Below, piece after piece: positions 2,806-61,319 of a stretch of DNA of 64,000 nucleotides. The position numbers and the translations under genes were made by a program. Position 1 is the stretch's first letter; each line of letters starts with the position of its first letter. The notes under the pieces are model-generated. The model did no database searches. It saw only the letters and a list, made by a program, of their open reading frames with translations, and was not told where the DNA came from. This stretch comes from Bugula neritina (taxonomy: Eukaryota > Animalia > Bryozoa): contig OZ037770.1 in assembly GCA_964035545.1 (NCBI GenBank), forward strand, positions 5,054,662-5,118,661, read 5' to 3'.

Positions 2806-5800
2806 GTATGTTCATTCATAAAATTGAATTTCAACCGAAATATTTTAAATAATTGTTTCAACAAGTAAATATTTACTACTTTGTGTTAAAAAACTTTTAG
2901 TAAAAATTTGAAGCAATTGGTTAAATACTTTGTCTTAATTTTAAAATGGCAACTTAAAAGCATAAGCTCCTATTCACATGTCATTATCTCAGAATTTAAA
3001 TTATTCAACGTTTAATAATACTAATCTTGTTTGTTTTATTCAGGTGAAAAATTGTCAGAAACAGAAACAAATAAGTTGAAGATGCTAGTTGCTGAGCTCA
3101 AACTGCGAGGAGATCAGAACAATTCAACTGGTAAATTCTTTTAGACAGAACTTGATGTTGGTCATTTTACTTAAGTTAGTATAGGAGTATGACCTGTGTC
3201 ATGAACACACCTGAATAATCAAGGTTCTTCTTAATTTTGCTTGATTTCTCATGTTTTTTTTTCAATCATTCAGCTACTTTTGACTGCAGAGTGAAAAAAA
3301 CCATAACTCTCTGAAATCAAAAGTAGCTCAATAATTAGAAAAAACATGGGAAATCAAGCAAAATTTAGAAGAACCTTGATTTTTTAGGTGTGTTCATTTA
3401 GGCTTTACTACTTTTGGGCAAAACCCATGTTCATTAGCAGCTAAATTGTAAAAAATAGCTATAAACAGGAGATTTCCAGTGTGTACTAAATTAAGTAAAA
3501 TGACCTATGTGTACAGCCACCACTTGATAAAACTCCTTGTTTTGCAAAGCTGGCCATACATGTAGATATCTAAAAGCTTTTTTATGCATTGGTCAATTGT
3601 AATCCATTGCTTTTTTGCTGTTAATGATTAGGCAAAATTTTAACTGTATAGTTTTCAAATGATGACAAAAATCAACTGTTCACATGACTGTCTAGAAATG
3701 TTAGCTGATGATCTGAGTGATCTCTCTGAAGATGATGGCAATCTGTACCTCAATGGAGAGAATGGGGAAGGCCTGAAGTTGATACAACTTGAATTGAAGT
3801 CAACCACCAACCCAAAGATAAAGCAGCTGTTCTCAGATACTGACAAGGTGAATGTATCAGTTGATGAATATATTATGTCTATAGACTCTCTCTACTAGAT
3901 AAACATGTCTAGTCGTTGAACTACTTCTAGAAAAAGATCAGTCTGTGTGACAGCCGATCCGATAGTGGTTACTGTATCAGCTGGTACTTGTTGCTACGTC
4001 AACACGGGTGCTGTTTGGCACAGATGCCTATGTTTTGTGATTCATTTAATGAAGGGTGAATGGATGGAGGACACAGATGCAAGCCACAACTCTATTTTTG
4101 TCTATTGCCAACAGTATATTTTTCAAGTTAGACCTCATTCATACTTAAAATCATACTCATAATTGCACTCATAATGTACTTGTACTTTACTGTAACCTAT
4201 AACCCTGAAAATTACAAACATATTGTTAACTTAACATTAATTACAAAGCTGACAAAACATTTAGTTAATGAAGTTCAAAACAAAAGATAATATACGTAAT
4301 ACTTGATACTTACAATTATTTTGACAGTTAAGAATAGATTGCCTGCATCTTTAGCAGGAGGACAATTGAGCTACACTGACTCATCGGTCAAAAACTGTCA
4401 GTAAATAGCTATCGCGAAAGCTTTCACAAATAGCTTTCGTTACACAATGATTTTTGGAAAGCTGCCAAAAAGCCACTGCAACAGTCTAAATGCAATTTTT
4501 CAGTTTACATCAGTTAACTTTTAATTTTTAGCCATTTTAGTTTTTGAGCTGTGTCTGTTTGGTTAAGGTTCAATCTGTTGTCACATGCAAATTAGGATGT
4601 ATATATAGTTTTGTGATTTTTAGCTACTTTGATGTACTGGTTTGTGCACCTGCTTGTAAATTTCTATGGCTTATTTTGGGTTTTTGAGAAGACTGGGAGT
4701 AGCATAAGTAGTTTTCCGAGAGAGATCTATAAAAAGCCAGGTGTAAATAAAGAGGAGAGGTAGAGAGGTCAGAGGTGTTTTGGAGAAGTGAATGGGATGT
4801 AGTGTTAACATTGCCCAGCAGTCTTTGTTGAGTAATTCTAGTGGAGCAAATATTTAATAATGTCGTTTTTTCCTGAAACCTTTAAACTTCTCTGTACTTC
4901 TACCATAATTTTCTGTTGCATCTGATAGTATCTTTAGAATTAGTGAACTTTTTGTTAACATGGTTTGGCTTTGAAAACTCAGTGCATATATGAGACTTTA
5001 AATGTCAAAATATATGACATGTCAATATAGCCAAGCATCGTCATTAGTTACTTCTATTGCTTTACCATGCAATTTATATACTTGATTTGTAGAAATTTAG
5101 GGTTGATTGCAACCTATTATCAATTGACCATAATCAATGTAATTGCAGCCTACTCTTGTTTTTAAACCATACTTTAATAGTCTTTTTTAATGCTTAAACG
5201 ATTACCAAATGCAATGGAATGTTTCATTGTTAAAAATATCATTTGCTGTAATACAATAGTTTATGCTACTCAAATAGCTAATAAACATATAAAAGATAAA
5301 ATACAAAAAGTAACTGAGGTGTAAAATGAATTTTACAAAAGGTTGTTTGACTGGTGTTTTACAAGACATAGAACTTTGAGGCCGGTTTAGAGTTTTAAAA
5401 TCTAACTTCATATTAGCTATTTATTTTTAAAGTGTTTCATCTTATACTGGATAATTTGACTCCTGTACGTCACTACTTTATGCAATACTCTAACTATATT
5501 TGTATCCAGGTGTTCAGTATGACCAGAGAGAGAGAGGAAGAGCTCTGATAATAAACAACAAGCATTTTGTTGAAAGACCAGACTTATGCAGGGAAGGTTC
5601 AGATGCTGATGCTGAGAACATGTCTGTCATGTTGAAATCTCTCAAGTTTGATGTTGAGACAAACACAGACCTAAAGGCAGGGGTATGTTGTTGTTATGGT
5701 GAAAACAATGCGAGCACTATTTAACCATTAAACCTCAAAAATTCACACAATGATGGACTGTAACTGTTCAGTTTATCAATGCCCAAAAATTAGGACTATA

Positions 5801-7468
5801 TAGAAAACCCTAAGCATGTTTGCTGATCACAATTTTCTTGTTTGCAGGTTGGATAATTATTATTTTATTCAGTTTTCATAACTTTGTATCAGTTATTAAA
5901 CATATTTCTTTTCATATTGGTAGGAAATGATGTCTGCTGTGAAGTCTGAGATAAGAATAGAGAAAAACAATGGCTTGGGCTGTCAAATACTGGTTATTAT
6001 GACTCATGGTGGAGAAGATAACTGCATATATGGAGCTGACCTTGAGCAGGTCAACCTTACAGACTTCTATGATTTACTTGCTCCTTTGAGTCTGAAGCCT
6101 AAACCTACAGTTGTTATCTTAGAAGCTTGCAGTGGAGGTAATTACATTTTTGTATAGGAAACTTTCATTTTTAGTCAAGTAGTGAAAATAATACAGAGAC
6201 CCTTGAAAAGCTCTTTCTGAACTGATCAAATTTCTTTTTTACTCACGATGCAAGTTTAAATGCATTTGTTTTTCTTACAGCAAACATTGATGTGAATCCA
6301 GACAGATCAGGTCTTGCAGCAGCTCAAGAAGAAGAAACTGAAGCTGTCTCTTCTGTACATTCTGAAGCTAATGATGATGATATTGTATATCCTGAAACAC
6401 CCAGTGTAATAAGACCCATCAGACCTGTCTCACCACCAGAATATAGAGTAGAAGAACATATGACAAGACTGGATGTTGATAATCTTCTTGTTCTGAAGAG
6501 TAACGTCTGCTGTAAGTATAATAAGAGACAGTGATTGGCTGATATTTCTAAACTGTTGTACTTTGTCACCTATCTAAAAAATGTTCTTTGCCTTTTTCTT
6601 GCGTTACTTCTACATTTTTAATCTTGTTGACTTGATAAGCTTCTTTAAACTGAGGTGACTAAAATGTTTTCTGGAACTTTGAGATTTAAGTTGTAGTACA
6701 CTATAGCTTAAAACATTTTAGACTTTGTCGGACTAGACCATGATTTTGGCTGCATTTAATATTATTATAGCATCAAAAAGACATCCTGAGTATGGATCTC
6801 CCATGATTAGAGTCCTAATATCTTCAATCTACAAACATGCCTGTCACCGTGATCTCTACACCATCTTTCAGCAGGTAAGTTAAAAGCTCAAAAGGTTTTT
6901 GCTATTTTAGCTTTTACGCCAAAAACTATTCCTCATCGTGGCATCTCTTCCATCTCCATGTGTTCAAACCATCATGTCATTTGAAAAAAACAATTTAAGT
7001 TGTTCTGAGTACAAGATAATGTCATTCAATGCTTTATTTGTTTAAGTTGTAGAGTTTAGTCTCTGTTGTTATGGTTTCTTTAGAGTACTGGCTCAGTACT
7101 ATATTGATAGTTTCTCTCCTTTTTTAATATGTTCTTGTAGTCTGCGCTAATAACTGGTCCACTTTATCAAATGACTTTACTGTATCGGACAACTCCAAAA
7201 GTTTTACTACTTAAGATTGTTAAAGTAGGATACAATATTCTAACAGCTGGGAGTTGTACTTTATTACTTTTAGTAGTGAACTGATAAACAGTCTTACTAG
7301 TCATTACTTACTCTACAGGTACAGACTAAACTAGTGAAGAAACTGTATGCAGATGAAGATTCAGAGAGAAGCAGAAATTTGATTGTAATCTGGAAGACTC
7401 TTCCTCCCCGTAAAAGACTTTACCTGTTTCCAGGCTTTGATGGGTTGGATGAAGAGGCCAAATCCTAA
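803..7468 (+). CDS. LRR-Roc-COR-caspase gene copy A (5' LRR exons lie outside the window). Exons 803-2805, 3044-3130, 3696-3847, 5510-5682, 5924-6137, 6281-6511, 6771-6874, 7319-7468. Frameshifted at about 5525-5541 if all exons are used
   Basis: GT-AG boundaries with exon lengths identical to copy B except the first caspase exon (173 vs 171 nt). LRRs, Roc G1 GNTMAGKTS, G3 DMGG, G4 THKD, COR, then caspase ALIINN, MTHG, EACSG, SKRHPEYGS, LYLFPG. Confidence 0.85.
3159..3506. mobile_element. Palindromic MITE in intron (paralogous copy at 56749-57172)
   Basis: TIRs GGTCATTTTACTTAA...TTAAGTAAAATGACC, long internal inverted repeat, apparent ATGT TSD. Confidence 0.7.
3946..4483. mobile_element. Probable solo LTR, present only in copy A
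   Basis: TGT...ACA termini, flanks GTCTG/GTCTA, empty site cagtctgaacgc near 57606 in copy B. Confidence 0.65.
5510..7468 (+). CDS. Copy A caspase (peptidase C14A) exons
   Basis: RGRALIINNKHF, R-x-GS-x-x-D, ILVIMTHG, VILEACSG, GSPMI, KRLYLFPG; stop TAA 7466-7468; AATAAA at 8047. Confidence 0.85.
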
Positions 7469-43256: not shown

Positions 43257-43951
43257 TATCTGCCTCCGACACAATTGGTTTCATTCGATTTAACCGAAGG
43301 AACCATTTCCATAATGCGCATAACGCGAAGGAAATTTTTCATCGAAGGAACCGTTCGGTGTAATTTCCGGCTGCGGTTTTGCTTCGATGCAACTGGTTCC
43401 ATAGAGCGAATGAGAAAATCCATTCGCATAATGCGATAATGGAAACGCAGTGTGTGTGTTAAACCACTACTATTGAATGCTGTCACACTGTTATATTTAA
43501 TTACCTTTTTGTATACAATTATATATGTGGCTGTATCTAGCTTTGTTTATCCCACTATATAGGTGATTGAAATATTCCAAAAATTCCTTCGATATGAGTT
43601 CTTTGCATTTTCCAGAAACTGTATCAAGTCAAATAAAAACCATCACTATCTGTTTAAGTCACAACTTATTCAACTTTAAAGTGTTAGATGCAAAGAAATA
43701 ATTGTAATGAATATATATTTATATATAATAAATTATATAAATGCCTGAGAAAGTTATCAAAGCCCCTGAATTAAATATGGTGACTTGATGTTTTGTTCAG
43801 ACTTTTCTGAGAAAATTTATGTATACTACAATACTGAAAAATAACAGGTGACCATATTTTATTACTTCATGTATAATAAATGTTTTAGATGGAGTTGCTA
43901 CACCTTAGTTGATACTTATTACCAAGAAAGAGACTCTACTATTTGGTAACC

Positions 43952-46900
43952 ATGGCAACAGCTGGTGAGTGAAATTGAATACTATTTTATTCACTTATTT
44001 CTTGAAAAGTAGTAATATTTAAACTCTAAAGATATGTTGATATTATGCCACCACCATTTAATATAAATATATAAAACTATTTTATTATCACTACTTCCTA
44101 TAATACTGTTTTATGTCACCATGCAAATAAGCGTAATACTGTGTCACCTATTAGTGTATTACTTCGAAAATAATACAATAGATAAAATTATGCAAGCAGT
44201 TGGGTTGAAGTTGTTTTATCTCAACACAATAAACACTGAACTATAAGCTATACATAAAGTGATTGGTTAAAAAAAATATAAAGCTATCTAATAAAATATA
44301 TGTTAGTCATTGTTATGATTACTGAAATCCACCATATAATGAATCTATTCAATCAGTAGATGACAGGTGTCAGAATGATAGACACCACCTGCTAGCACTG
44401 TGTAATAATCACACTGTTACTGTATTATGTTACAGATAATATGAGAATATGGTTCAGACATTCTGGACAGCCTTCTAAGAGCTTGTCAGATGTAGACAAA
44501 GCTTATACCAAGCCATATACTACTGCTGAGGTGAAACGTGAAGTTGGGAGTTATCATATCACAGATCTGGAAGTGGAAGGGGAAATTCCAAGTAACATTG
44601 GAGAGATTGCTGGTAGAGCCCTGTGTCTATATGTTTTTAAACTGAGTGACGGAGCAAGTCTAGACAAGTGAGTGTCTATTAAAATAGCTGTGGAAATGAT
44701 AAATGAATTCAATTGTGTTATTTATTAAATGATAATTGATAATAGATGCTGAAGTTAAAGCATCTTTTTGCTCATAATATATTCATACAATATAATATAC
44801 ATCAACATAGTAATATGTGCAACATTGTATGTAATCCAATTAAGCTTATAGTTGTAGAAACTAGGAAATGTAAAACTGCCTCTACTGCTACTTCATAATA
44901 TTGAATAAGTCATGTTTTATGTATATATAGCTAAAAGCTGGAGTAATGTACAGTTTATAATATATTATACAGAAGACTATGTTATGTCATCAACTGCAAA
45001 TTTACAATCTTAAACATTAGTTAATATATTAATTTACAGAGCATTGTAGAGTGAGGCCTTATGTACTATAAACTAACAGCTAACCTTGTATAATGAAACT
45101 TCCTCTCCTCACCTACAACATAATATAACTGAAACTCTTTGGTGTTTTTTGCATCAATATATCTGTTTCCTGCATGTTTTATGTTGAATACACAAGTAGT
45201 CCGATATAATGGTATATATTATTTTGATATATGACACACTTTATATCATGGTAAAAAACCTAAATATGCATATTCTTTGAAGTTATCTAATAGCTTGTCC
45301 TAACGTATAAATAATACAGTTTAATGGCATGCCATTGTATATCCTCATATCACAGAACTTTTCATAATCAATAATAAAACAGCCATCGGCAGTTTACTGG
45401 CAATCATGATAATAATTGAATCCTTCTTAGCTTCTTGCATCAATCACTTTGATTATCCATTACTCGAATGAATTTGTTTTCTGCATTTTTTACCTGGCTG
45501 ACTGTGCTTAGCAATATAACATGTACAGCGTATATTAATATGACACAGGAGACTACATATATTACACACTTTATATTACAGTCTATGCCAGCTGACTCAG
45601 TTAGAGAAACTAAACTTAAGTGGGAATCCTCTCAAGACAGTACCAGAAGTTGTGTCATTATTAACATCACTTAAAGAGTTGTATATGTGGAGCTGTGATT
45701 TATCTACTCTACCTGAGAGGTTTGTGGAGCACAATCTTTTTTGTTTCTAACATTCAATGATTGACATGTTGATATAATGCTTGCCAAGTATTGCTAATTA
45801 GTATGTCACTATGTATTGTTGAAAAGCATAAAGTTAAGTTACATATTTCTTGAGGCTATATAATATTAGAGTTTCTGAAAACTTGAAAATAATTAATTTT
45901 CAGTTTTCTGGCATTACATTTCCTATTACTATGAAACCTTCTCCAACAAATACTATAGCACTCGCTTATAGTTTACTAGAATCTATTTCACATTAAATGC
46001 TTATTAGGTTTCGGTATTTCACTTTGAATTTGCTTTGTTGCAATAAATATGTTTCTTGGATATTTTACTTGATTGAATACACAAGTAGTATATACTATTA
46101 TCATGATACAGTGGTTTAAACACATAAAAAACTTTATATTACAGCCTGTGTAAGCTGACTCAGCTAGAGAAACTAAACATAGGATATAATCCTCTCAACA
46201 CAGTACCAGAAGTTGTGTCATCACTTACATCACTTAAAGAGTTGGATATGTGGAACTGTAAATTATCTACTCTACCTGAGAGGTTTGTGGAACACAGTCT
46301 TTCTTGTTTCAAACACTCAATAATTCACATTTTGATATAATGCTTACCGAGTATTGGTAATTAGTATGTCACTGTGTGTTGTTGAAAAGCATAGAGTTAA
46401 AAGTTACATATTTCTTGAGGCTATATGATATTAGAGTTTCTGAAAACTTGAAAATAAATAATATGTTTCAGTTATCTGGCATTACATTTCCTATTACTAT
46501 GAAATCTTCTTCAACAAACACTATAGCACTCGCTTGTAGCTTACTAGAATCTATTTCACATTAAATGCTTATTAGGTTTCGGTATTTCACTTTGAATTTG
46601 CTTTGTTGCTATAAATATGTTTTTTGGATATTTTACTTGATTGAATACACAAGTAGTATATACTATTATCATGATACAGTGGTTTAAACACATAACACAC
46701 TTTATGTTACAGCCTGTGTAAGCTGACTCAGTTAGAGAAACAATACATGGGATGGAATCCTCTCAACACAGTACCAGAAGTTGTGTCATCACTCACATCA
46801 ATTAAAGAGTTGGATATGTGGAGCTGTGAGTTATCTACTCTACCTGGGAGGTTTGTATTGCACAATATTATCTCTGTTTCAAACATTTAATATTTCACTT

Positions 46901-49900
46901 CTTTAATGCTTATCAAGTAGTGTTATGCTAATTTATTATATATTGCCAACGTATGTTAAAAAACCTAAATATGCATTTTCGAACTTGTCCAATAGTTTGT
47001 CCTAAGGTGGAAATAATACAGCCTTATGGTATGCTATTGTATATCCTTATATCACAAGAACCTTTTGTAATGAATAATAAAACAGCCATCTGCAGTTTAC
47101 TGGCAATCATGGTAATAATCGAATCTTTCTTAGCTTCTTGCGTCACGCATTTTGACTATCCATTACCGCAATGAATTTTTTTTTGCATTTTTTACCTGGC
47201 TGACTGTGCTTAGCAATATAACATGTATATTATCATGTGTATTATTATGACACAGTAGACTACATATATCATACCCTTTATAATTATTGCAGTCTATGCC
47301 AGCTGACTCAGTTAGAGAAACTAGACATAAGATGGAATCCTCTCAACACAATACCAGAAGTTGTGTCATCACTCACATCACTTAAAGAGTTGAATATGAA
47401 GCACTGTGAATTATCTACTCTACCTGAAAGGTTTGTGGAACACAGTCTTTCTTGTTTCAAACACTCAATAATTCACATGTTGATATAATGCTTACCAAAT
47501 ATTGCTATAATTAGTATGTCACTATGTATTGTTGAAAAGCATAAAGCTCTTAATCGCATATTCCTTGAGACTATATGATATTAGAATTTCTCAAAACTTA
47601 AAAATAAATATGTTTCAGTTTTCTGGCATTACATTTCCTATTGCTATAAAACCTTCTTCAACAAATACTATAGCACCCACTTGTAGTTCACTAGAATCTA
47701 GTTCATGTTAAATGCTTTTTAGCTTTTGGTATTCTACTTTGAATTTGCCTTGTTGCAATAAAGTTATTTCTTGGATATTTTACCTGATTGAATACACAAG
47801 TATGGTATAATATACAGTATATAATAATATCCTGATACAGTGGATTATATATATTATGCAGTCAATATTACAGTCTATGTCAGCTGACTCAGTTAGAGAA
47901 ACTATACATAGAAAAGAATCCTCTCAACACAGTACCAGAAGTTGTGTCATCACTCACATCACTTAAAGAGTTGGATATGAGGAACTGTGAATTATCTACT
48001 CTACCTGAGAGGTTTGTGGATCACAGTCTTTCTTGTTTCAAACACTCAATAATTCACATGTTGATAAAATGCTTACCAAGTATTGGGAATTAGTATGTCA
48101 CTATGTATTGTTGAAAAGCATAAAGTTATAAATTACATATTTCTTGAGGCTATATTGAATTAGAGTTTCTCATTACTTGAAAATAAATATGTTTCAGTTA
48201 TCTGTCATTACATTTCCTATCGCTATAAAACTTTTTTAACAAATATTATAGCATCCACTTGTAGTTTACTATAGTGTGTATTTCTCATTAAATGGTTATT
48301 AGAGCCTTCTGTACTTTACTATGAATATGCCTTAGCGTAATAAATTTGCTATTTGGATATTTTACTTGATTGAATATGCAGTGTTTGTTATGATACAATA
48401 AATTAAATATATCACATACTTCTTATTACAGTCTATGTCAGCTGACTCAGTTAGAGAAACTAGACATAGAAGGGAATCCTCTCAACACAGTACCAGAAGT
48501 TGTGTCATTACTCACATCACTTAAAGAGTTGAATATGGGGAGATGTAACTTATCTAATCTACCTGAGAGGTTTGTGTGCCACAACGAGTTTTATATATCA
48601 CTTTTAACATCCAATAATTGTTATTTTGAAGCAGATTTCAACACAGTAAATACTACATTAAGATGTTTATACTTTTTCTCTGCAAACCTACATATGAATC
48701 TCATCGTTTCTGGGGATATTGTCAATTAGCACACTATCTAGAAGTTTCCTCTGCTTCACAAGTTATTTTATAGTATTTCTATATCTTTTTGAATATTTCC
48801 CATGATAGGTTGACTGGGCTGTTTTTCAGAAATCGTTTTATTAACTCTTTTCATTATATTATAACTATAGCTACTTCTGTACACATAATATTATATTGTT
48901 ATGGTAACGCAGTTTCTTATCACTGTCTAATTGAATGCACAAGTGCTATATACAGTACATAATATTATCCTGATACAGTGGATTACATGTATTATGCACT
49001 TTATATTACAGTCTATGTCAGGTGACTCAGATAGAGAAACTAAACATAGGAGATAATCCTCTCTACACAGTACCAGAAGTTGTGTCATCACTCACATCAC
49101 TTAAAGAGTTGGATATGGAGAGCTGTGGATTACCTACTCTGCCTGAGAGGTTTGTGGAACACAGTCTTTTTTGTTTCAAAAACTGAATAATTCACATGTT
49201 TTTATAATGCTTACCAAGTGTTGTTAATTAATATGTCACTATGTATTGTTGAAAAGCATAAAGCTATAAATTGAAAAATTTTCTTGAGTCTATATGATAT
49301 TAGAGTTTCTAAACACTTGAAAATAAATATGTTTCAGTTATTAGGCATTACATTTCTCAATGCTATAAAGCCTTCTTCAACAAATACCATAGCATCCACT
49401 TGTAGTTTACTAGAATCTATTTCATGTTAAATGCTTATCAGCTTTCAGTATTTTACTTTGAATTTGCTTTATTGCAATAAGTTTGTTTCTTGGATATTTT
49501 ACCTGATTGAATACACAAGTATAGTATATACAGTATATAATAATATCCTGATACAGTAGATTACATATATTATGCACTTTATATTACAGTCTGTGTCAGC
49601 TGATTCAGTTAGAGAAACTAAACATAGCAAGGAATCTTCTCAAAACAGTACCAGAAGTTTTGTCATCACTCACATCACTTAAAGATTTGAATATGGGGAA
49701 GTGTAAATTATCTACTCTACCTGAGAGGTTTGTTTGTCACTACAAATTTTATATCATTTTCAACATTCAATAATTATTATTTTGTAGCAGAATTTCATCA
49801 CAGTAAATACTACATTAAGATGTTTATACTTTTTTTCTGCAAACCTCCATATGAATCTTACCGTTTCTGGGGATATTGTTAATTAGCACGCTATCTAGAA

Positions 49901-52900
49901 ATTTCCCGACTTCACAAATAAATTTTTAGTCTTCCAATATCTTTTCTGAAATGCTTCCCATAATAGGTTGACTGGGCTTTTCTTCAGAAATCGTTTTATC
50001 AACTCTTTTCATTATATTATAATGATAGCTACTTCTGTACACATAATTGGTATATATTGTAGTAATTTTGGTAATTACTGGTTTTGTGGGCTTCTAGCGA
50101 GCAATATATTTATATTATCTTCCAATAATATCACGGCTTGTAACAGGAATGAATGATTTATTTATACACAATAAAAGTAGTAGCAAAACGATAAATCCGG
50201 TATCACTGGTAAAAATATACATCTATCTTACACTAACTAGCCATCATACTCTGAGTATGGCTGCTATCTACATCCAGCGCCCTCTGCGCATCGCTGGGGC
50301 TCTCATGTGACAGATATATGATTGGCTGGGGAGCGCGTGGGATAACATACTACACTCCCCACTACACTGCCTCTCCCAGCAGGAAGCCCACCTTCCTGAT
50401 AATACCAAAATAAAAAATTAAAATAACAACAAAAAAACAATAAGATATCTGCATCACAAGATCAAAAAATGTATACTTAGGCCAACGGCCTATTAAAAAA
50501 AAAATCTTGTTAAAATATAAAAATTATGTACTATAAAACTAAGAGATTGTATATGTACCAAGAGCCTCTGGTCTGGCACCAAGAGATATGATGTGTAGAG
50601 AGACGGTAAGTGAGGCACAACCTGCGGCGCAGATCAGGAGGACAGCTGGATGGAGTTAGGGACGGGGAAATAGAAAGGGAAGGAGAACGTCATCCACGAC
50701 ACGTGTCGGGGCAATGTGGAGGGTAGACACTCAGTCTTCATCATCCCTCTTGAGCTGGGCCACAGAGTCCCGGAGAGCCTTGAGTTCAGAAGCGGCGGCT
50801 GATATCCTAGGCGCCAACCGCTTGATCTCCCTCTCTCTAGTTCATGCATCCGTTGCTCCATCTCTCTTAGATTTCTAGCAACAGAGGAGTGGCGGTCGGG
50901 GGATGAAGATTGCTAACGCCGGCGTCATCTCTGGGGGATTTCTATCCGTTGTACGACTACTACGGGTACGGTGTTGGAAAAGGGCACAGTGTGAGCAGGG
51001 GGTGACGGGCGAGGTATTGTGAGCTTCCTAAACCCAGGGGATTTGGGGCAGGGTCCTTGGGTAATGGTACGGGGAGCGGGGAATTTTTGGCTCAGCCGTT
51101 TGTAACGTGCAGGGTCTGAAATGAATGGCTTGGTGAGGCCTAGAAAAGTAGAGAAGGAAAGCTTGTTCACATTGTAGAGATGTCCAGTGTGACACTCCAT
51201 AGTCCTCTGGTAACGGAGGATGTAGTCCCTGTGGTAGCTGTACTCCCCACAGGGACAGAAGGTGGTGATGAAATGTTGAGGGATGTGTACTCGGAGGCGG
51301 CGAGGTGTGGTAAAATGCTGTTGACAAAGCCGGCAGGTGGTGCAGTCGTCGTCTCCTTTATTTTGTTGAATCATGTCCTCGGTATGTTGGGTAACCCAGC
51401 TAGACCGGGTTATGAGTATTTCTGGTAGTGTTGTGGAGGTAGGTTCCGTCTCCTAAGCCATCTCCAATGGTGGCATATCATTGTAGTTAGGAGAGCGAGT
51501 GGTACCTGAAAGAGCAGAATTATTGTTGGATCGAATTTGATCTTTACAGCATAATTCTGATGACAATCGACTGTTACTAGTCTGAGAGTCATGCATCTTT
51601 TTGTACGGCACTCGAGAGACTGTGTTTGGATGCCTAGACTGACTGAGAAACATAGTGACATGGCTGGAACTGTTTGCCCCGGGCGCATTAATTCCACCTA
51701 CTACTCCGCCCTCGCAAAAAATGATATTTTCGTGGTGTTTACAACTCCCACGTTTCGCTGCCAGTCTCTCCGTACGGCACTCAGCTTGGCCTTCATATCT
51801 GCCGCTTGTAACACAGTCACATACGAAGTCTTTCAAATATGCTGGGGGTTGCCTAGTACGTTGTCCACTTTCTAAGGGAAGTGGTGTGCTAGTTGGGGGA
51901 GATGGTGTAGTCACTGCTGGTGGGGGTGTACTCACTGGTGGACTTTTATGTTCCGCCGGTGGCGTTTTCGGCCTGCTATTGACTGTTGTATCATTTTCAA
52001 GATCTCCAGATGGAGCCCTCCCCTGGGGGGGTTATGCACTTCCGGAGCTGAAACAGGTTCCGGAAGTGGTGGCGTTAGACTTGGCGCTGGAGGTGGTGGG
52101 CGCACTTTTGGTAACGCAAGTGGCCTTTCCTGCCTCACCAAGTCTTCTGCCCGCGGCATGATCACTTCATACTCTGGTTCAGGTCGCCGCCGCCCGCGCG
52201 TTGCTGTCTGCCTCCTGGGCTCTAACAACGGGGGAGCTTTTCCTGCCGCACCTGGGCTAGTCCAATACGACTTCAAGCGAGCCTCATTTTAGATAGACAC
52301 CTGTCCTGAGCGCTCAAACTTGTAGGTGTGATTGGGCATCACTTCAACTACCGCGTAGGGTCTCACGAACTTAGGCTGTAGCTTAGCCGCCTGTTCTCGA
52401 TGCCTACGGCAGTTGACCATTCAGACCCAGTCTCCAACTTGGTAGAGGGGTGGTTCTTCGGAGTCTTCTTTTTGCACTTGCCACTGCTTTTTCCGCAGTA
52501 TTTCGTGTGCAACCTTCATTTGCTCTACCGATTTGCTGGCATACCCAAATCCCAAACCCCAAATCCTGGGGGGTAACCCAGTCTTCCACAGCTCGTACTC
52601 TTTCAGGATCAGTCGCCACGCCATGACGGCCGACGTGGTGCCCCAGGTACTTCACCTCCAGCTGCAAGAGAGCGCTCTTGGAAGGTTTGAGCTTCAGGCC
52701 GGCACCTCTGAGTCATTCGAACATCTCCTGCATATGACTGACGTGTGTCTGGAAATCCGGGAAAATCACAATGACAACATCGAGGTAGACTAGCAGTGTC
52801 TCCCAGTGGAGCCCACTGAGGACCTGTTCCATGAGCCTCTGAAACGTGGCGGGGGCGGAGGTCAACCCAAAGGGTAGTACTTTCCACTTCCACAGTCCGT

Positions 52901-55900
52901 TCCATGTGATGAACGCCGTCTTCTCCTGGGCGTCGGGAGTCAGAGGGACCTGCCAATAACCGCTCAGCAAGTTTAGTGTGCTAAAGTACTTGCTGCCGGC
53001 CAGGGCGTCCAGAGATTCATCAATCCGAGGTAGAGGGTAGGCGTCCTGTATGCTTACGCTATTTAGTTTGCGGTAATCCACACAGAACCACCAACTGCCG
53101 TTTTTCTTCCGGACCAGGACGACCGGCGAGCTCCACGCACTATGTGCTGGCTCTATGAGGCCGCGGTCCAAAAGATCCCGGACTTGTCGGCTGACCTCCT
53201 TTTCTTCATTAGTAAAAAATCACTTAGTAGATTATATAGTATGTTTGATTTAGGTAATTCAAGTTCTACTTTTATTTATTTTGAAATAAAAGATCTGCTT
53301 TTATATTGTAAACCAAAGAAGACAAAAAAAATTATTAAATATTGCAACTTTGTTTTTTTTTCATGCTCTTTTTTGGTTATCTATCTCCAATTCTCAGTGT
53401 AATAGAAACCAATTTTTATCCTATTCTTGTTCTTAAACAGCCTGTTAATATATTGTTTCATAATTACTTTACAATTCTAAATTTTGAATTAACTTGCCTT
53501 TAAAAATGTAACGTGTTCCTGCAAGATGATGACTTTCCAGAATTTTATTCTCTCGTAGTGAAATAATTCACAACTTCTATTTCCTGTCTAGAAACTATAA
53601 TACATTTATTAGAGCAATTAGTGAGAGGTTGTGGCAGAAGTATTTTATTCTACTTGAAATTACTTTAATGGCTTGTGTAGATGTTTCAGAGCTCTACTGT
53701 GTTCCTATTTGATGATAAATTGCATGTATTATGACACATATAAAACAATATTCCTTATAATTATAACATCCATATAGTAGAATATCAGTGTGAGTAGTTA
53801 CTCAGTGATCAGAAATGTCAGAAGTATTTTATTTTCACTTGACATAACTTTAATGCCTTATGCAGAATATGCCACAAAGCTGTAGCCTACCATGTTCATG
53901 TTTGCTGATAACTGTGTTATGGCACATACTAGGAATTTTCTACTCTGTAGTATAAAATATTACTCTCTCTAGTAGAACAGCAGTGTGAACAGTTACTCAG
54001 TTATCTGCCATATAGAAAAAGATGATAGTATTACATGTAGGTTGTTGTTTTTTATGACAGTACTTAGTACAGATGTAGCACTTTTCTTACCAAATATATA
54101 CTTACAATTATACTGTTATATTATATATCTTTATAAAATAATTAAAATGTTATGCATCGTATATATATAATATGGTACTTGTACATAATTGTAACTTAGA
54201 AATACTTGTTTTCTTTCCTTAATTAATGTACTAATTCAAAGTATTGTATATAAACTTGTTATAGTAACTGCCACTTGGTACTATATTATGTGTAATAATT
54301 GTTATACTAATATTGGGTATCTTTATGAAAACTATTATATCATTTACCTGTATAGCTAGGTCTAATAATAGAAATATTATATATTATTAGAATACAGAGA
54401 TTAAAGAAGTTACAGAAACTCACAATTTCAGAGAATAATTTCACCAGTCTACCTTCTTCAGTATGTGCATTGATTAATCTGCACACACTGGATATATCCA
54501 GCAACAGATCCATGACATCTTTGAACCCTGAGATACTACAGCTAACACATCTTGGATCCTTCGATACAGATGGATGTGATGCTCTTACATCTCCTCCACA
54601 AGAAGTCTGTGAGAGAGGACTGGAGTCTGTGCGACAATACTACACAGACTTGGCTAAAGGTGCAGGTAGAAATCTTCCATTTGCTACAATAGTGGTGTTG
54701 GGGAACACCATGGCAGGTAAAACCAGCCTAATCAAAACATTACAGAGCACTGACAGGAAGAGAGTTCTGACTGACAGAAGTCCTAATGCAGAGCATGATG
54801 AGACCACAAAGGTGTTTAATGTGGAAGAGGTGGAAGTGAATGGTACAACTCTTCGTCTCATAGATATGGGAGGCCAAGAGGTCTACCATATCACATACCA
54901 TTTGACACTAAGACAGAATTGTGTACCAGTAGTTGTAGTCAACATGGAGCAGTATGATCAGATTTCGAAAATGTCTACAGACAGAGAGGCTGTGAGAAAG
55001 TTGGCCTTTGACTTCATGTCTCACCTCTATCTCGCTCATCCATTTCTTGGCCCACCTAAGCTTGTCTTCACACACAAAGATAAGTTTCCGAGTGAAGTTT
55101 TTCAACAGCTTCGAAGAAATCTTCTTGAAGTGTCTGAGCAGTTTTGCAAAAATATTCTTGAAGAAGAGAAAGGTTTAGAAGGTGACTTTGCTCGAATTCA
55201 ACATTTCACTCAATCAAACGGAAAAGTGTTCTCCGACGACAACATATATGAAGTTGGAAAATTTGACGAGTACAAGATATTTGAATCGATTAAAAAATCT
55301 CTTCTTCAAAGTTGCCGACACTTTATCAAACCCCTTCCAAAAGTCTGGGAGGATGTCAACACAAAAGTGTTGTCCTTGCAGTCCGCACACAATACCTTTG
55401 ATGAAATCCTGGCAGAGATAAAGAAAGAACGGAATGATATTGATAGAAACCAATTGGATACCATCATCATGTACATGCATGATTGTGGAAAAGTTCTCTG
55501 GTATAAGAATGTTGATGCACTCAGGCCATACATATTTCACAAGATTACAGAAGTTACCAAACTGCTGTGTGTCTTGTATCACCATGATCCAAACATCTGG
55601 CAGAGCAGAGTAGATCAGTTCAAACCATATTTATCAAGAGGAGTGAGAATTGAGAAGCAGGACTTTGAAGAGTCTGTGAACTACTTCCAAGCAACTGGCC
55701 TAATGATGCAATCCCTTCTTGAATATCTGATAGCTCAGGAAACTTTATTTAGAAATCCGGGTGATGTTGAAATTGGGCTTTGTTTGCTCAGCACGTTCCG
55801 TTTGTTGTATGGCCCTAGGAATGATGAATCCTATGATTCCTACTTCATAATCCCTCAGTTTGCCAAAGAATCCTACAGCCTCTCCTACACTCAACAAAAG

Positions 55901-58900
55901 GAGTTACTGCTTCATACTGAGACTCAGTTTAATGGTCTGGCGTTACCGCAGCATGTCTACCATCAAATGACTGTTGGTTTGTTAGAGATGTTTTCTAAAG
56001 AGTTTGCTACAATGCAAGTGAAGAGGAATGGTGCTAACGTCTACCAAGATGAAATATACACACAACTGGTACACGATTACGCATTGAGAAGAGTTTTACT
56101 CTACGTTTCATCTGATGCGTCCAACATTTCCAGAATGTGGGAGAATCTCATTTCGGTCAACAACAACATCCTCAGACATGTTATGGAGACTTGGACTGCT
56201 AGTCGACCAGTCACTGCCTGCATTTGTGCTCACTGCTTGCTACTTGGGGTTTCCTGTCCTAAAAAACTCTTTCACCCCAAATGGTGTCTTCGATCCTTAA
56301 AAAACCTGCTGCCACCTAATGTCAAGAAGTGTGGTGGAGCTTCAAAGATGTTATGTAATGGAGAGGAGGTCCCTAGCGCTTTAATCCACCCATGTATGTT
56401 CACTCATAAAATTGAATTTCAACAGAAATATTTTCAATAATTGTTTCAACAGATAAATATTTACTACTTTGTGTTGCAAAAAACTTTTAGTAAAAATTTT
56501 GAGCAATTAGTTGAATATTTTGTCTTAATTATAAAATCGCAACTTAAAAGCATGAGCTCCTATTCACATGTCATTATCTCGTAAATTAAATTCTTTAAGG
56601 TTTAGTAATACAAATCTTGTTTGTTCTATTCAGGTGAGAAATTGTCAGAAACAGAATCAAATAAGTTGAAGAAGCTAGTTGCTGAGCTCAAACTGCGAGG
56701 AGATCAGAACAATTCAACTGGTAAATTTTTTTAGACTGAACTTGATGTGGGTCATTTTACTTAATTTAGTACAGGAGTATGACCTGTGTCATGAACACAC
56801 CTAAATAATCAAACCTACTCCTAATTTTGCTTGATTTCCCATGTTTTTTCCTAATTATTCAGCTACTTTTGACTGCAGACTGTCATGAAAAAACCATATT
56901 TCTCTGAAATCAAAAGTAGCTGAATAATTAGGAAAAAATATGGGAAATTAAGCAAAATTTAGAAGAACCTTGATTTTTTAGGTGTGTTCATTTAAGCTTT
57001 ACTACTTTTGGGCAAAACTCATGTTCATTAGCAGCTAAAATGTAAAAAAATAGCTAAAAACAAGTGTGTTCATCACTTTTGGGCAAAAACTTATGTTAAT
57101 TAGCAGTTAAATTGTAAAAAATAGCTAAAAACTGGAGATTTCCAGTGTGCACTAAATTAAGTAAAATGACCTATGTGTACAGCCACCACTTGATAAAACT
57201 CCTTGTTTTGCAAAGCTGGCCATACATGTAGATATCTAAGAGCTTTTTTATGCATGCGTTCATTGTAATCCATTGCTTTTTGCTGCTAGTGGTTGAGAAA
57301 AATTTTAATTGTATGGCTTTTAAATGATGAAAAAAATCAACTGTTCACATGACTGTCTAGAAATATTAGCTGATGATCTGAGTGATCTCTCTGAAGATGA
57401 TGACAATCTGTACCTTGATGGAGAGAATGGAGAAGGCCTGAAGCTGATACAACTTGAATTGAAGCCAACCACCAACCCAAAGATAAAGCAGCTGTTCTCA
57501 GATACTGACAAGGTGAATGTATCAGTTGATGAATATATTATGTCTATAGACTCTCTTTACTAGATAATCATGACTATAGTCGTTCAATTACTTTTAGAAA
57601 AAGTTCAGTCTGAACGCAATTTTTCCATTTACTTCAGTTAACTTTTAATTTTTAGCCATGTCTGTTTTTGGGCTGTGTCTGTTTGGTTAAGGTTTAATCT
57701 GTTGTCACACGGTTAGGAAATATTTGTAGTGTCGAGATTTCTGGCCCCTTTGATGTATTGATTTGTGCACCTGCATGCATGGTTGAATATTTTCTGCAAC
57801 ATATTCTGATTTTTTTGTGAAGAGTAGCAGTAGTATATAAACATTATTCCAAAAGATATTAAAGGTCAGATGTAAATAAAGACTAAAAGAGAGGTAGAGA
57901 GGTCCGTGGTGTCCTTAAGAAATAAACTGGATGTAGTGTTAAGATCGCCTATAAGTCTCTGTGGGATAATCTCAGTGGGACAAAATTGTTTTTCGCCTGG
58001 AACCTTAAACTTTTCTGTACCTTCACCATAGTTTGCTATTGCATTCTATGGTATCTTTAAAGTTAGTAAATACTTTGTTGAAGAGGTTTGGCTTTTGAAG
58101 TTTAGTTCACATATAATGGTTTAAATGTCAAAATTGATGGTATCTTGTCAGTATGGCCATGCATTGTCATTATTTACTTCCATAGCTTTACCAATTTATA
58201 TACTTGATTTAGAAAAATGTAGGATTATTTACAAGCTATTATCAACAAATCAGAATTAATATACTTGTAGCCTGCTATTGTTTTTTAAACCATACCTCAA
58301 GGATATTTTTTTATGCTTAACCGACTACCAAATGCAATGAACTATTTCGTTAGTAAAATTATCATTCGGTCTGATACATTGAAATTAATTTTATTCTAGT
58401 TTATGCTACCCAATTGGCTAATAAAATAAAATCTAAAATACAAAAAGCAATTGAGATATGAAATGTTTTTTTTCAAAAGTATGTTTGACTGGTTTTTTAC
58501 AAGACTTAAAAATTTAAGACCTGTTTGGAGTTTGAGAATTACTACTGTATGCAATCCTCTAACTATCTTTTTATCCAGGTGTTCAGTATGACCAGAAAGA
58601 GAGAAAAAGCTCTGATAATAAACAACAAGCATTTTGTTGAAAGACCAGACTTATGCAGGAAAGGTTCAGATGCTGATGTTGAAAACATGTCTGTCATGTT
58701 GAAATCTCTCAAGTTTGATGTTGAGACACACACAGACCTGACAGCAGAGGTATGTTGTTATGGTGGAAGTAATACGAGCACTATTTAACCATAACACCTT
58801 GCAAATTGATACAATGTTGCACTGTAACTGTTCAGTCTATTAATGCTTGAAAATTAGGACTGTATGGAAAACCAAAAGCATGTTTGCTGCTGGTCACAAT

Positions 58901-60531
58901 TTTGTTTTTTTGCAGGTTCAGAAATTATTATTTTATTCAGTCATCGTAACTTTGTATCGATTATTAAACATCGCTATTTTCAAACTTGTAGGAAATGCTG
59001 TCTGCTGTGAAGTCTGAGATAAGAAGAAAAAAAAGGAATGGCTTGGGCTGTCAAATACTGGTTATTATGACTCATGGTGGAGAAGATAACTGCATCTATG
59101 GAACTGACCTTGAGCAGGTCAACCTTACAGACTTCTATGATTTTCTCGCTCCTCTGAGTCTGAAGCCTAAACCTACAGTTGTCATCCTACAAGCTTGCAG
59201 TGGAGGTAATTACATTTTTGTATAGAAAACTTTCATTTTTAGTCAAGTAGTGAAAATAATACAGAGACCCTTGAAAAGTTTTTTCTGTACTGATCAAATT
59301 TCTTTTTTACTCATCACGGTGCAAGTTTGAATGCGTTTGTTTTTCTTGCAGCAAACATTGATGTTAATCGAGGCAGATCAGATCTTGCAGCAGCTCAAGA
59401 AGAAGAAACTGAAGCTGTCTCTTCTACACATTCTGAAGCTGATTATGATGATATTGTATATCCTGAAACACCCAGTGTGATAAGACCCATCAGACCTGTC
59501 TCACCACCAGAATATAGAGTAGAAGAACATATGACAAGACTGGATATTGATAATCTTCTTGTTCTGAAGAGTAACGTCTGCTGTAAGTATAATAAGAGAC
59601 AGTGATAGGCTGATATTTCTAAACTGTTGTACTTTGTCACCTATCTAAAAATTGTTCTTTGCCGTTTTCTTGCGTTACTTCCACATTTTTAATCTTGTTG
59701 ATTTGATAAGCTTCTAAACTGAGGTGACTAAAATGTTTTCTAGAACTTTGAGATTTAAATTGTGTTACAGTTTAGCTTAAAACATCTTATACTTTGTCTG
59801 ACTAGACCATGATTTTGGCTGCATTTAATATTATTATAGCATCAAAGAGACATCCTGAGTATGGATCTCCCATGATTAGAGTCCTAGTATCTTCAATCTA
59901 CAAACATGCCTGTCACCGTGATCTCCACACCATCTTTCAGCAGGTAAGTTGAAAGCTCAAAAGTGTTTTTGCTATTTTAACTTTTATTCAAGAAATAATT
60001 TCTCATCATGGCATCTCTTCCATCTCCATGTTCAAACCATTATGTCATTTGAAAGAAACAATTTAAACTGTTCTGAGTACAAGAGAAAGTCATTCAATGT
60101 TTTACTTGTTTAAATTGTAGAGTTTAGTTTCTGTTGTTTCAATTTCTTTAGAGTAATGGCTCAGTACTATATTGATAGTTTCTCTCCTTTTATAATAATA
60201 TGTTCTTGTAGTCTGCTATAACAACTAGTTTAATTTATTAAATGACATGACTGTAGTGGACAACTCCTAAAGTTTTACTACTCAGGATTGTTAAAGTATA
60301 TTCTAACAGCTGGGAGTTGTACCTTATTTCTTCTAGTAGTGAATTGATAAACAATCTTACTAGTTCTTACTTACTCTACAGGTACAGACTAAATTAGTGA
60401 AGAAACTCTATGCAGATGAAGATTCAGAAAGAAGCAGAAATTTGGTTGTAATCTGGAAGACTCTTCCTCCCCGTAAAAGACTTTACCTGTTTCCTGGCTT
60501 TGATGGGTTGAGTGAAGAGGCCAAATCCTAA
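43952..60531 (+). CDS. LRR-Roc-COR-caspase gene copy B, complete, about 1486 aa. Exons 43952-43964, 44436-44667, eight LRR exons, 54391-56393, 56634-56720, 57361-57512, 58579-58749, 58992-59205, 59352-59582, 59840-59943, 60382-60531
   Basis: Kozak aaccATGg; all junctions GT-AG and phase-compatible; summed CDS 4461 nt with no internal stop seen; Roc GNTMAGKTS/DMGG/THKD; caspase MTHG/QACSG; AATAAA at 61097. Confidence 0.85.
45582..45719 (+). CDS. LRR exon 1 (138 bp, phase 2-2): LCQLTQLEKLNLSGNPLKTVPEVVSLLTSLKELYMWSCDLSTLPE
   Basis: cag| ... AG|gtttgt; two 23-aa LRRs. Confidence 0.9.
46145..46282 (+). CDS. LRR exon 2 (NIGYN / DMWNC)
   Basis: Same 138-bp structure. Confidence 0.9.
46713..46850 (+). 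CDS. LRR exon 3 (YMGWN / DMWSC)
   Basis: Same 138-bp structure. Confidence 0.9.
47293..47430 (+). CDS. LRR exon 4 (DIRWN / NMKHC)
   Basis: Same structure; within ORF 47237-47488. Confidence 0.9.
47874..48011 (+). CDS. LRR exon 5 (YIEKN / DMRNC)
   Basis: Same 138-bp structure. Confidence 0.9.
48432..48569 (+). CDS. LRR exon 6 (DIEGN / NMGRC)
   Basis: Same 138-bp structure. Confidence 0.9.
49012..49149 (+). CDS. LRR exon 7 (NIGDN / DMESC)
   Basis: Same 138-bp structure. Confidence 0.9.
49590..49727 (+). CDS. LRR exon 8 (NIARN / NMGKC)
   Basis: Same 138-bp structure. Confidence 0.9.
50058..53207 (-). mobile_element. Gypsy LTR retrotransposon 3, 5'-truncated and internally deleted, intronic antisense
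   Basis: RT 53171-52713 (WSSPVVLV, CVDYRKLN, PFGL), integrase C-terminus, zinc-finger ORF 51374-50925, PPT, 3' LTR about 50366-50058 (TGTAGT...ACTACA). Confidence 0.88.
54391..56393 (+). CDS. Copy B large exon: last LRRs + Roc GTPase + COR
   Basis: ORF 54470-56440; 2003 nt, same length as in copy A. Confidence 0.92.
58579..60531 (+). CDS. Copy B caspase (peptidase C14A) exons
   Basis: VFSMTRKREKALIINN, CRKGSDAD, MTHG, QACSG, SKRHPEYGS, LYLFPG. Confidence 0.88.
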
Positions 60532-61319
60532 CTCAATACATGACTCTATTTGTAATTTGCACAACACTCAGTTTAAGTTTGACTAAAATTCCGTGACCAT
60601 TAAACCTAAGCAGATAGTGAGTTTGTGTGAATGGGTAATGATTACTTGACAGTCAAATTATCTATCAAAGATTTTTAACTTTTGTATCTTATTCTGAGTA
60701 TAAAGCTATATACTGATAACATTTACTTTGGCAAATTAGCTTGTGATGTCTTTTTTTAATAAATAATCATATTATATGATATAAGCTGTACTGCCATATT
60801 ACAGGAATGATAAAAACAGCTCATTTGTGATTTTGTATGTTCTGCCTATATAGGTTACTATGTTATAGCATAATTAGTATAATATGGTTGCAGTTGATTT
60901 TATGTCCTGTAAAACATTAACCAATCCTGCTTATATGGTTTTTACTCAGCCAAATTTGTTATCATTTATATTTTGATGTGACACTAAGCACTGACTATGT
61001 TGTTTCATCCACATGTTCTAACTGCTATGCTAACATTATTATCATAATTGCAGTAGCTTGCTAGTATATATCGAAGTTTGCTTTTTATATTTTATCAATA
61101 AATTTATTCAAATATTTTATGTGAAAATTGTTTGCTGATATGATTTCAAGGTCTGAATATTTCACTTCAATAATCTGTGACTAAAGAAACACGTCCATTA
61201 TCTACAAATAATAGTCATGAAATCCGTCATTTTCTTATCTGCATCTGCAAACCAATCAATTATCAAATAACCTAATGAAATTATTTTTTATTGAATGCTA
61301 TTCAGACATTATGTGCAGG

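Follow-up and report, generated by a model that had tools for sequence, protein, structure and literature searches.

Bacteria encode proteins in which leucine-rich repeats (LRRs) are followed by an AP-GTPase (Roc) domain, a COR domain and one of at least 24 alternative C-terminal effectors, a caspase included, and on computational grounds these proteins have been interpreted as conflict systems (Kaur, Iyer, Burroughs, Aravind 2021, eLife, PMC8195603). Their N-terminal LRRs evolve rapidly and a logic of sensor, switch and effector has been proposed for them; they are prokaryotic and known by sequence analysis only. The animal ROCO proteins MFHAS1, LRRK1, LRRK2 and DAPK1 are products of single-copy genes with an LRR-Roc-COR core, of which MFHAS1 has no catalytic output domain and the other three carry kinases. 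The NLR inflammasomes and the Apaf-1/CED-4 apoptosome offer another comparison: a sensor made of repeats acts through a nucleotide switch to activate a caspase by induced proximity; their switch is a STAND ATPase (NACHT or NB-ARC) and their caspase is recruited through CARD, PYD or DED adaptors. Here we analyse a window of 64,000 nucleotides from the bryozoan Bugula neritina (assembly GCA_964035545.1, contig OZ037770.1, positions 5,054,662 to 5,118,661, forward strand) and a gene within it that is predicted to encode LRRs, a Roc GTPase, a COR domain and a caspase in one chain. In contrast to the bacterial proteins, the caspase is of the metazoan C14A type (nearest to caspase-3/6/7, -8, -9 and CED-3), and the gene is intron-rich, spliced and present in at least 67 copies in an animal genome. 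Unlike the animal ROCOs it has a caspase as its output domain and belongs to a large array family, and unlike the NLRs and the apoptosome it pairs a Ras-like GTPase and COR with a caspase that is covalently fused.

One open frame from LRRs to caspase

The main gene occupies 43952-60531 on the + strand, where 18 exons joined in a script give one open frame of 4,461 nt (1,486 codons) with a single terminal stop (Table 1). The part from 54356 to 60531, joined in the same way, is by itself one continuous open frame, again with a single terminal stop. The DNA of the window is AT-rich, with short exons, GT..AG introns and inserted retroelements. Pfam, PDB and fold searches were run exon by exon, and frame, hydropathy and motif positions were computed on the joined model. 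The 1,486-residue model opens with a short N-terminal part, continues with about 19 LRRs, Roc and both halves of COR (COR-A and COR-B), and ends, after an acidic linker, in a caspase of metazoan type (C14A). All elements that an earlier, sequence-only reading had placed along the gene, i.e. the LRRs, the Roc motifs GNTMAGKTS, DMGG and THKD, the COR domain, the acidic linker and the caspase, were recovered at the same positions by Pfam, PDB alignments and predicted fold. Its estimate of about 19 LRRs also holds, with two in each of eight cassette exons, about three more in the exon that holds Roc and a possible further one in exon 2.

Pfam returned no CARD, DED, Death or TIR match on the N-terminal or linker exons, which agrees with the earlier impression that no death-fold domain (CARD or DED) is recognisable. 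Hydropathy gave no transmembrane-like or signal segment in the whole 1,486-codon model, and the protein is predicted to be soluble and probably cytosolic. When the upstream regions of five paralogs were compared, only intronic-repeat or whole-region similarity appeared and no conserved extra N-terminal exon could be distinguished; tblastn with proteins of the bryozoan Watersipora left the N-terminus of the gene unmatched. As neither comparison supported an N-terminal exon, exons 1 and 2 are given as a phase-consistent model.

The COR exon is spliced to the caspase exons

Four RNA-like public runs (X1-X4) from three studies were compared with the locus over 54600-60560. The records are Logan contigs 90-98% identical to it, and the RNA nature of the runs was deduced from intron gaps. 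Depth over this interval is exon-shaped: exon bins reach hundreds to thousands, against 0-13 in the intron bins at 56391-56589, 57784-58380, 58779-58977 and 59973-60171. GT..AG joints lead from the COR exon to the linker exon (56393>56634; X2, X3 and X4), from there to the acidic exon (56720>57361; X1-X4), and from the acidic exon into caspase exon 1 (57512>58579; X2 and X4). Within the caspase they join exons 1 and 2 (58749>58992; X1, X2 and X4), exons 2 and 3 (59205>59352; X3) and exons 3 and 4 (59582>59840; X3 and X4), and at the last junction (59943>60382) only loose ends match, at 59946 and 60379. A single 491-nt contig runs from the last part of the COR exon across the 87-nt exon into the acidic exon. 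The splice positions 56393, 56634, 57361 and 58579, first proposed from the letters of the DNA, are the same to the base as these joints.

Such a locus could also hold an LRR-Roc-COR gene next to a caspase gene of its own, the two being joined only by the model or by read-through. In principle a promoter could lie in the 1.07-kb intron that precedes caspase exon 1, and several Watersipora models end after the COR domain (P0037, P0040 and P0042). Yet in as many as four runs, which belong to three studies, canonical joints connect the COR exon by way of two linker exons with the caspase exons, the frame is continuous, Roc-COR and caspase exons are linked in 67/69 paralogs (see below), and full-length Watersipora models exist. 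Because the GT..AG joints span the COR exon to the exon with the catalytic His and Cys, and continue to 59840, two separate genes are refuted for this gene or a near-identical copy; given these joints and the continuous frame we reject that arrangement, to which we attach almost no probability. COR-to-caspase splicing is thus real for the gene or such a copy. The RNA-like reads contradict transcripts that end after COR beside a separate caspase gene, the outcome that the earlier reading had set against its own claim of one transcript in one frame. That claim stands, with the joints running from the COR exon through the caspase exons, a continuous frame, and LRR joins that are modelled.

Two further features of the RNA-like contigs lie in the linker region. 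A non-canonical joint, 57420>58577 (GA..CC, 1,156 nt skipped), occurs in all four runs beside the canonical 57512>58579; its probable source is transcripts of paralogs whose acidic exon differs and which were aligned at 90% likeness. In the intron between the two linker exons, the segment 56789-57186 reaches a summed contig depth of up to 41,789, which is 10-50 times that of exon bins, with many odd joints, and looks like a very abundant transcribed repeat.

The central exon has the sequence and predicted fold of a ROCO protein

On the open reading frame (ORF) 54356-56393, Pfam matched Roc at 32.1 bits (1.5e-7; cut-off 27) as well as Arf, Ras and MMR_HSR1, and matched COR-A below threshold (19.1 against a cut-off of 35.3). 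No NACHT or NB-ARC match was found by Pfam on this exon. In an alignment of 34 homologues of 21-67% identity, the P-loop GxxxxGK, the switch-I Thr (T113), DxGG and THxD are all conserved, which supports the proposal that the GTP-binding motifs are intact. The G4 motif of LRRK2 is THLD, and the main gene likewise has THxD. Searched against PDB as a profile, the 34 homologues matched LRRK1 and the Roco structures of C. tepidum and M. barkeri over both Roc and COR-A.

An AlphaFold2 model of the Roc-COR exon built on the same alignment reached a pLDDT (predicted local distance difference test) of 87.7 and a pTM (predicted template modelling score) of 0.84. Using this model as the Foldseek query, the top 35 matches were all ROCO proteins, at 12-17% sequence identity to the solved structures. 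They include LRRK1 (E 1.2e-20), the C. tepidum Roco (CtRoco) LRR-Roc-COR structure (6hlu, E 6e-19) and LRRK2, the CtRoco Roc-COR tandem (3dpu, template modelling score TMt 0.64) and the isolated COR domain (3dpt, TMt 0.60-0.66, E 3e-9). COR is therefore assigned by predicted structure in addition to the weak Pfam match. Judged by domain matches and predicted fold, the protein is a ROCO, with a predicted Roc GTPase domain and a COR domain directly C-terminal to it, and it is not an NLR/STAND member. The predicted fold fits both LRRK1 and LRRK2. In architecture it is not an MFHAS1 orthologue, as judged from its predicted C-terminal caspase and its at least 67 paralogs.

At its C-terminal end COR-B carries a C-x-H-C...C cluster (56225-56356, +; residues 586-629 of the exon piece) that is invariant or nearly so in the 34 homologues. 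It is not explained by published ROCO structures and may bind metal.

The caspase domain keeps its catalytic and S1-pocket residues

Pfam Peptidase_C14 matched 58525-58788 at 40.3 bits and 58995-59225 at 29.5 bits (cut-off 21.4). In the PDB alignments, RKGSD (within CRKGSDAD) falls on the R-x-G-x-D of caspase-3/6/7 (R-N-G-T-D; ancestral caspase-3/6/7, 7e-8), THG on SHG, and QACSG on the QACRG/QACQG of caspase-3/6/7 and caspase-8. The p10 exon, SKRHPEYGSPMI (SKR...GSP), is 64% identical to the Watersipora homologue P0088, whose segment SARHPRYGSPFI aligns to SWRNSARGSWFI of CED-3 (SAR on SWR; GSWFI region). In P0088 the Pfam match to the caspase domain extends over profile positions 1-230 of 233 (5e-40), and the domain can be aligned with caspase-3 over its full length. 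All S1-pocket residues are kept, namely the Arg in p20 (CRKGSD), the Gln before the Cys (QACSG) and, via P0088, the Arg in p10 (SKR). These residue-level alignments to solved caspases and to P0088 and CED-3 are the reason for which we take the catalytic dyad and the Asp-binding S1 residues to be intact, and they bear out the earlier assignment of the catalytic His (THG), the catalytic Cys (QACSG) and both S1 Arg residues (RKGS and SKR). The domain is, by its residues, a C14A member with predicted Asp-directed activity.

The caspase is preceded by an acidic linker of about 80 residues and contains an acidic intersubunit linker of 78 residues. Active-site residues were inspected in 12 copies of caspase exon 1 and in the second copy within the window, and exon identities and open frames were recorded for the other paralogs. 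In 12 paralog loci with Roc-COR exons of 73-82% identity, caspase exon 1 reaches 80-93%; it is the most conserved exon of the paralogs, and its S1 Arg is invariant (12/12). The second half of the acidic exon (57441-57512), with KLIQLELKPTTNPKIKQLFS-x-TDK just before the caspase, is conserved in 28/30 paralogs, and the acidic first half varies; KLIQLELKPTTNPKIKQLFS-x-TDK could be a docking or processing motif.

Variation among LRR cassettes lies on the predicted binding face

All eight LRR exons of 138 nt have symmetric phase and are on average 88% alike in DNA, and the introns that flank them differ far more. Of the 45 codons of the cassette exons, only positions 13, 14, 36, 37 and 39 show four or more different residues, and positions 11, 12 and 34 show three each. 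Nearly all of these variable positions are an x of LxLxxN/C, on the concave face, and the framework is nearly invariant. The concave face is the ligand-binding face in LRR receptors, and it is on this predicted binding face that the LRR variation sits.

The gene belongs to a large family in tandem arrays

The whole assembly was searched (216 Mb in 321 contigs; the window is C6:5054662-5118661). Out of 138 candidates, 69 Roc-COR exons were scored, and 67 of the 69 are without stops. They lie mostly in tandem arrays on contigs C6 (2.5-6.3 Mb), C1 (32.5-35 Mb) and C5. A search with the caspase exon that bears the catalytic His and Cys gave 126 matches, 125 of them without stops. Such an exon is found downstream on the same strand of 67/69 Roc-COR exons within 12 kb, and of 63 within 5 kb. 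The identities of the Roc-COR and caspase exons fall together (Spearman 0.83, n=62; a descriptive value, the paralogs not being independent), and this joint divergence fits an old fusion that was followed by duplication of whole genes. More distant Roc-COR exons on C7, C2 and C6 (12.9 Mb) stand 2.6-3.5 kb upstream of otherwise unpaired caspase exons. The family thus comprises at least 67 LRR-Roc-COR-caspase genes in this genome, and its true number exceeds 70 because the distant Roc-COR exons also precede unpaired caspase exons. The arrangement of the exons and the variation in the LRRs indicate that it is most likely a lineage-specific family that arose by repeated whole-gene duplication in tandem arrays, with diversification of the LRR binding face.

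A second complete paralog lies in the window itself, 36 kb upstream of the main gene, to which it is 86-96% identical in amino acids per exon and 93% identical in DNA over the Roc-COR exon (Table 1). Integrase-bearing elements are found between the two genes at 18000-21000 and 40800-43300 (+), and a retroelement fragment is inserted in the LRR-to-Roc intron of the main gene (50500-53200, - strand; RVT_1 1.6e-20 on 52713-53171, minus). A repeated Cys/His-rich ORF (FCPCGE..YxRDYxLR[HY]QR) occurs at 42063-43256 (+) and 50925-51374 (-).

For Pfam NACHT, an exon-wise search of the 216 Mb in which only the best candidates were scored gave one weak partial match (33 bits, profile positions 3-47, C6:312551-312682). 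As a lead, the NLR repertoire appears to be missing or very small by this profile.

The strongest Pfam Roc/Rab-like matches in the assembly fall on small contigs (C66, C101, C110, C230, C160, C42, C204, C307 and others). Several in-frame TAA and TAG codons and hardly any TGA are seen in these matches. As this is the signature of a ciliate-type code, the assembly probably carries contigs of a ciliate epibiont.

Relatives in another bryozoan and in metagenomes, and bacterial proteins of like architecture

The closest named proteins are from Watersipora subatra, at 35-39% identity, and closer unnamed matches are present in JGI, ENA and Logan metagenome assemblies. Two full-length RefSeq proteins of W. 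subatra, XP_067947674.1 (1,419 aa, "MFHAS1 homolog") and XP_067948342.1 (1,413 aa, "uncharacterized protein"), are automatic models that combine LRRs and Roc-COR with a full Peptidase_C14 domain (E 1e-36 and 5e-40, respectively) and are 30-39% identical to the Roc-COR exon of the main gene. They are true homologues in another cheilostome bryozoan, with names that come only from automatic annotation, and several partial family models accompany them. On two metagenome contigs, which stem from unrelated ENA samples, caspase exons likewise lie downstream of an ORF for LRRs or Roc-COR (39% and 28% identity) and on its strand. Word-indexed searches of limited sensitivity with P0088, using Roc-COR plus caspase or the caspase alone, returned only Watersipora proteins as full-length relatives, which is weak evidence that the family is restricted to bryozoans.

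A full-text literature search found no paper on an animal LRR-Roc-COR-caspase; the caspases described by Xu et al. 2011 (PMC3196919) are of the DED/DD/CARD kinds only. The sequence-only reading knew of no characterised protein with this architecture. It was right in that none was found in the literature searched, but the architecture is not unique to the locus, being shared by at least 67 genes, by Watersipora models and by bacterial forms. What is new is an animal version of a ROCO with a caspase effector, in a large transcribed family that is so far undescribed; the principle of a ROCO joined to an effector was already known from bacteria. Independent domain shuffling within animals is at least as likely an origin as descent from the bacterial form.

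Table 1. Exons of the main gene and of the second paralog in the window
Feature	Position	Strand	Basis
Putative exon 1, start codon	43952..43964	+	ACCATGG context and GTGAGT donor read from sequence; in frame with model; model only
Putative exon 2, N-terminal ~77 aa	44436..44667	+	Phase-compatible acceptor/donor pair; no Pfam family; model only
LRR cassette exon 1 of 8 (138 nt, 2 LRRs, symmetric phase)	45582..45719	+	AG/GT borders, 85-100% DNA repeat family, LRR peptide
LRR cassette exon 2	46145..46282	+	AG/GT borders, DNA repeat family, LRR peptide
LRR cassette exon 3	46713..46850	+	AG/GT borders, DNA repeat family, LRR peptide
LRR cassette exon 4	47293..47430	+	As other cassettes, plus Pfam LRR_1/LRR_4/LRR_8 on its ORF
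LRR cassette exon 5	47874..48011	+	AG/GT borders, DNA repeat family, LRR peptide
LRR cassette exon 6	48432..48569	+	AG/GT borders, DNA repeat family, LRR peptide
LRR cassette exon 7	49012..49149	+	AG/GT borders, DNA repeat family, LRR peptide
LRR cassette exon 8	49590..49727	+	AG/GT borders, DNA repeat family, LRR peptide
Large exon: last ~3 LRRs, Roc, COR-A, COR-B, C-x-H-C...C cluster	54391..56393	+	Acceptor 54391 inferred from phase; donor 56393 in RNA-like contigs
Linker exon, EKLSETESNKLKKLVAELKLRGDQNNST	56634..56720	+	GT..AG joints on both sides; kept in 25/30 paralog loci
Acidic linker exon, DDLSDLSEDDDNLYLDGENGEG then conserved KLIQLELKPTTNPKIKQLFSDTDK	57361..57512	+	GT..AG joint 57512>58579; exon found in 28/30 paralog loci
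Caspase exon 1: p20 start, S1 Arg in CRKGSDAD	58579..58749	+	Pfam Peptidase_C14 3.8e-10; PDB alignment 7e-8; RNA-like joints
Caspase exon 2: catalytic His (THG) and Cys (QACSG)	58992..59205	+	Pfam 7.5e-7; alignments to caspase-3/6/7, caspase-8, CED-3
Caspase exon 3: 78-aa Asp/Glu-rich intersubunit linker, first p10 strand	59352..59582	+	RNA-like joints
Caspase exon 4: p10, second S1 Arg in SKR, GSPMI	59840..59943	+	64% identity to Watersipora P0088
Caspase exon 5: C-terminal p10 strand, stop codon 60529-60531	60382..60531	+	BLASTP to P0088 C-terminus; loose ends at junction
Second complete paralog	804..7468	+	tblastn; Roc-COR exon 804-2804; LRR exons beyond window start
Second paralog, linker exons	3046-3129, 3698-3847	+	tblastn
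Second paralog, caspase exons	5527-5679, 5924-6136, 6283-6510, 6773-6874, 7319-7465	+	tblastn

Discussion

With at least 67 such genes in the genome, the locus looks like one member of a large uncharacterised family of single-chain cell-death or immune receptors. Of the gene structure and the domain identities we are nearly certain. How the parts would work together is modelled on the systems that they resemble. The variable LRR surface would recognise a non-self or danger ligand, or would hold the protein in an autoinhibited state. Roc-COR would convert the event at the LRRs into a nucleotide-dependent conformational or oligomeric change, by which two or more caspase domains would be brought together and activated by induced proximity, leading to cell death or to the processing of downstream substrates. 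A long intersubunit linker lets initiator caspases such as caspase-9 act without prior cleavage, and the long linker found here would help the caspase in the same way. The scheme of the earlier reading, in which ligand binding by the LRRs drives COR dimerisation and so switches on the attached caspase, is plausible. From this architecture we infer that a ligand is sensed, that proximity activates the caspase and that the protein acts in immunity or cell death, and the direction in which the GTPase would switch is likewise a matter of inference. Taken as a whole, function included, the proposal of a single-chain LRR-Roc-COR-caspase in a family of at least 67 genes that acts without an adaptor, in the manner of an NLR or apoptosome, to cause cell death or substrate processing seems to us probable, with considerable room for doubt.

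Several observations weigh against this proposal. In the C. tepidum Roco the GTP state is monomeric and the GDP or empty state dimeric; as GTP favours monomers there, a simple scheme of ligand, then dimer, then activity is not assured. Prediction of a COR homodimer (residues 286-641, two copies) scored 0.00 and gave no answer, which counts neither way. Since the RNA-like contigs match the locus at 90-98% and some paralogs are 96-99% identical, the joints are valid for this gene or a very close copy; they start from the COR exon, and the 5' third of the gene (43952-54391) is predicted only. The second paralog in the window reads EACSG (~6122-6136) where the main gene has QACSG, i.e. the Gln of the S1 pocket is replaced by Glu, and the pooled ratio of nonsynonymous to synonymous substitution rates (dN/dS) of the caspase exons between the two window copies is 0.48, mildly below 1 and based on few differences. 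One of the two metagenome contigs (L042; ENA ERZ4903308, 7658-8538; 28% Roc-COR identity) has SQG for SHG and has lost the p20 S1 Arg, with QACSG kept. Its caspase is likely a pseudo-caspase member of the family, and judging from these residues not every member need be an active protease.

Alternatively, the caspase could be mostly a non-catalytic scaffold or decoy that recruits or inhibits free caspases, as in cFLIP, and both the active-site drift to EACSG in the neighbouring paralog and the altered residues of L042 favour such a role. The main gene, however, keeps the His, the Cys, the Gln and both Arg residues, and among the paralogs no exon is better conserved than caspase exon 1, where the Arg is invariant in 12/12, which makes a decoy very unlikely here. 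The machine could also be the one we propose and its job a different one. In allorecognition, i.e. colony fusion or rejection or the control of symbionts rather than pathogen sensing, the hypervariable LRRs would read polymorphic self and non-self cues of other colonies and the caspase would kill cells of the contact zone. Large tandem arrays with a variable LRR face would suit this task, bryozoans are colonial and show allo-incompatibility (mentioned in PMC8195603), and the RNA-like runs with transcripts stem from a "symbiont metagenome" study. Against it, the diversity observed is among paralogs and not allelic, and no link of the genes to fusion loci is seen; we give it an outside chance. 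A role in the regulated turnover of tissues, for instance in the cyclic degeneration of polypides or at metamorphosis, or in non-lethal proteolytic signalling, with LRRs that bind endogenous partners, would agree with the developmental roles of caspases in many animals and with the presence of transcripts in untreated public RNA-like runs. At least 60 paralogs and variation at the LRR binding face are hard to square with a housekeeping or developmental role, and we consider this one quite unlikely.

If the adaptor-free receptor we propose is correct, a broader suggestion can be made. In invertebrates and plants, NLRs have typically undergone large expansions within single lineages, with LRRs that vary. 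It is conceivable that bryozoans replaced, or never had, an NLR repertoire, and that a germline array of about 70 to more than 100 LRR-Roc-COR-caspase genes supplies their main intracellular receptors for non-self or danger; this suggestion is tentative and may well prove wrong. If it were true, with a hypervariable LRR face, a GTPase switch and the executioner protease in each chain, recognition would lead to caspase activation without an adaptor, the family would join the NLR inflammasomes and the apoptosome as a third type of animal death receptor with a nucleotide switch, and its array of genes would parallel the bacterial Roco-effector systems.

ROCO proteins have been studied mainly because of LRRK2, and the target of the Roc-COR switch is still debated. 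Here such a switch is predicted to be wired to a caspase, for which the read-out is easy (autoprocessing, peptide cleavage or cell death), so the family could serve as a tractable reporter of Roc-COR signalling. The family also provides an animal counterpart to the bacterial LRR-Roc-COR-caspase conflict proteins, and thereby bears on the reuse of death and immunity modules across kingdoms. To our knowledge, almost nothing is known about bryozoan immunity. For comparative immunology the proposal, if true, would mean an animal receptor class that is built on a GTPase instead of a STAND ATPase, and that has been expanded and diversified like the NLRs.

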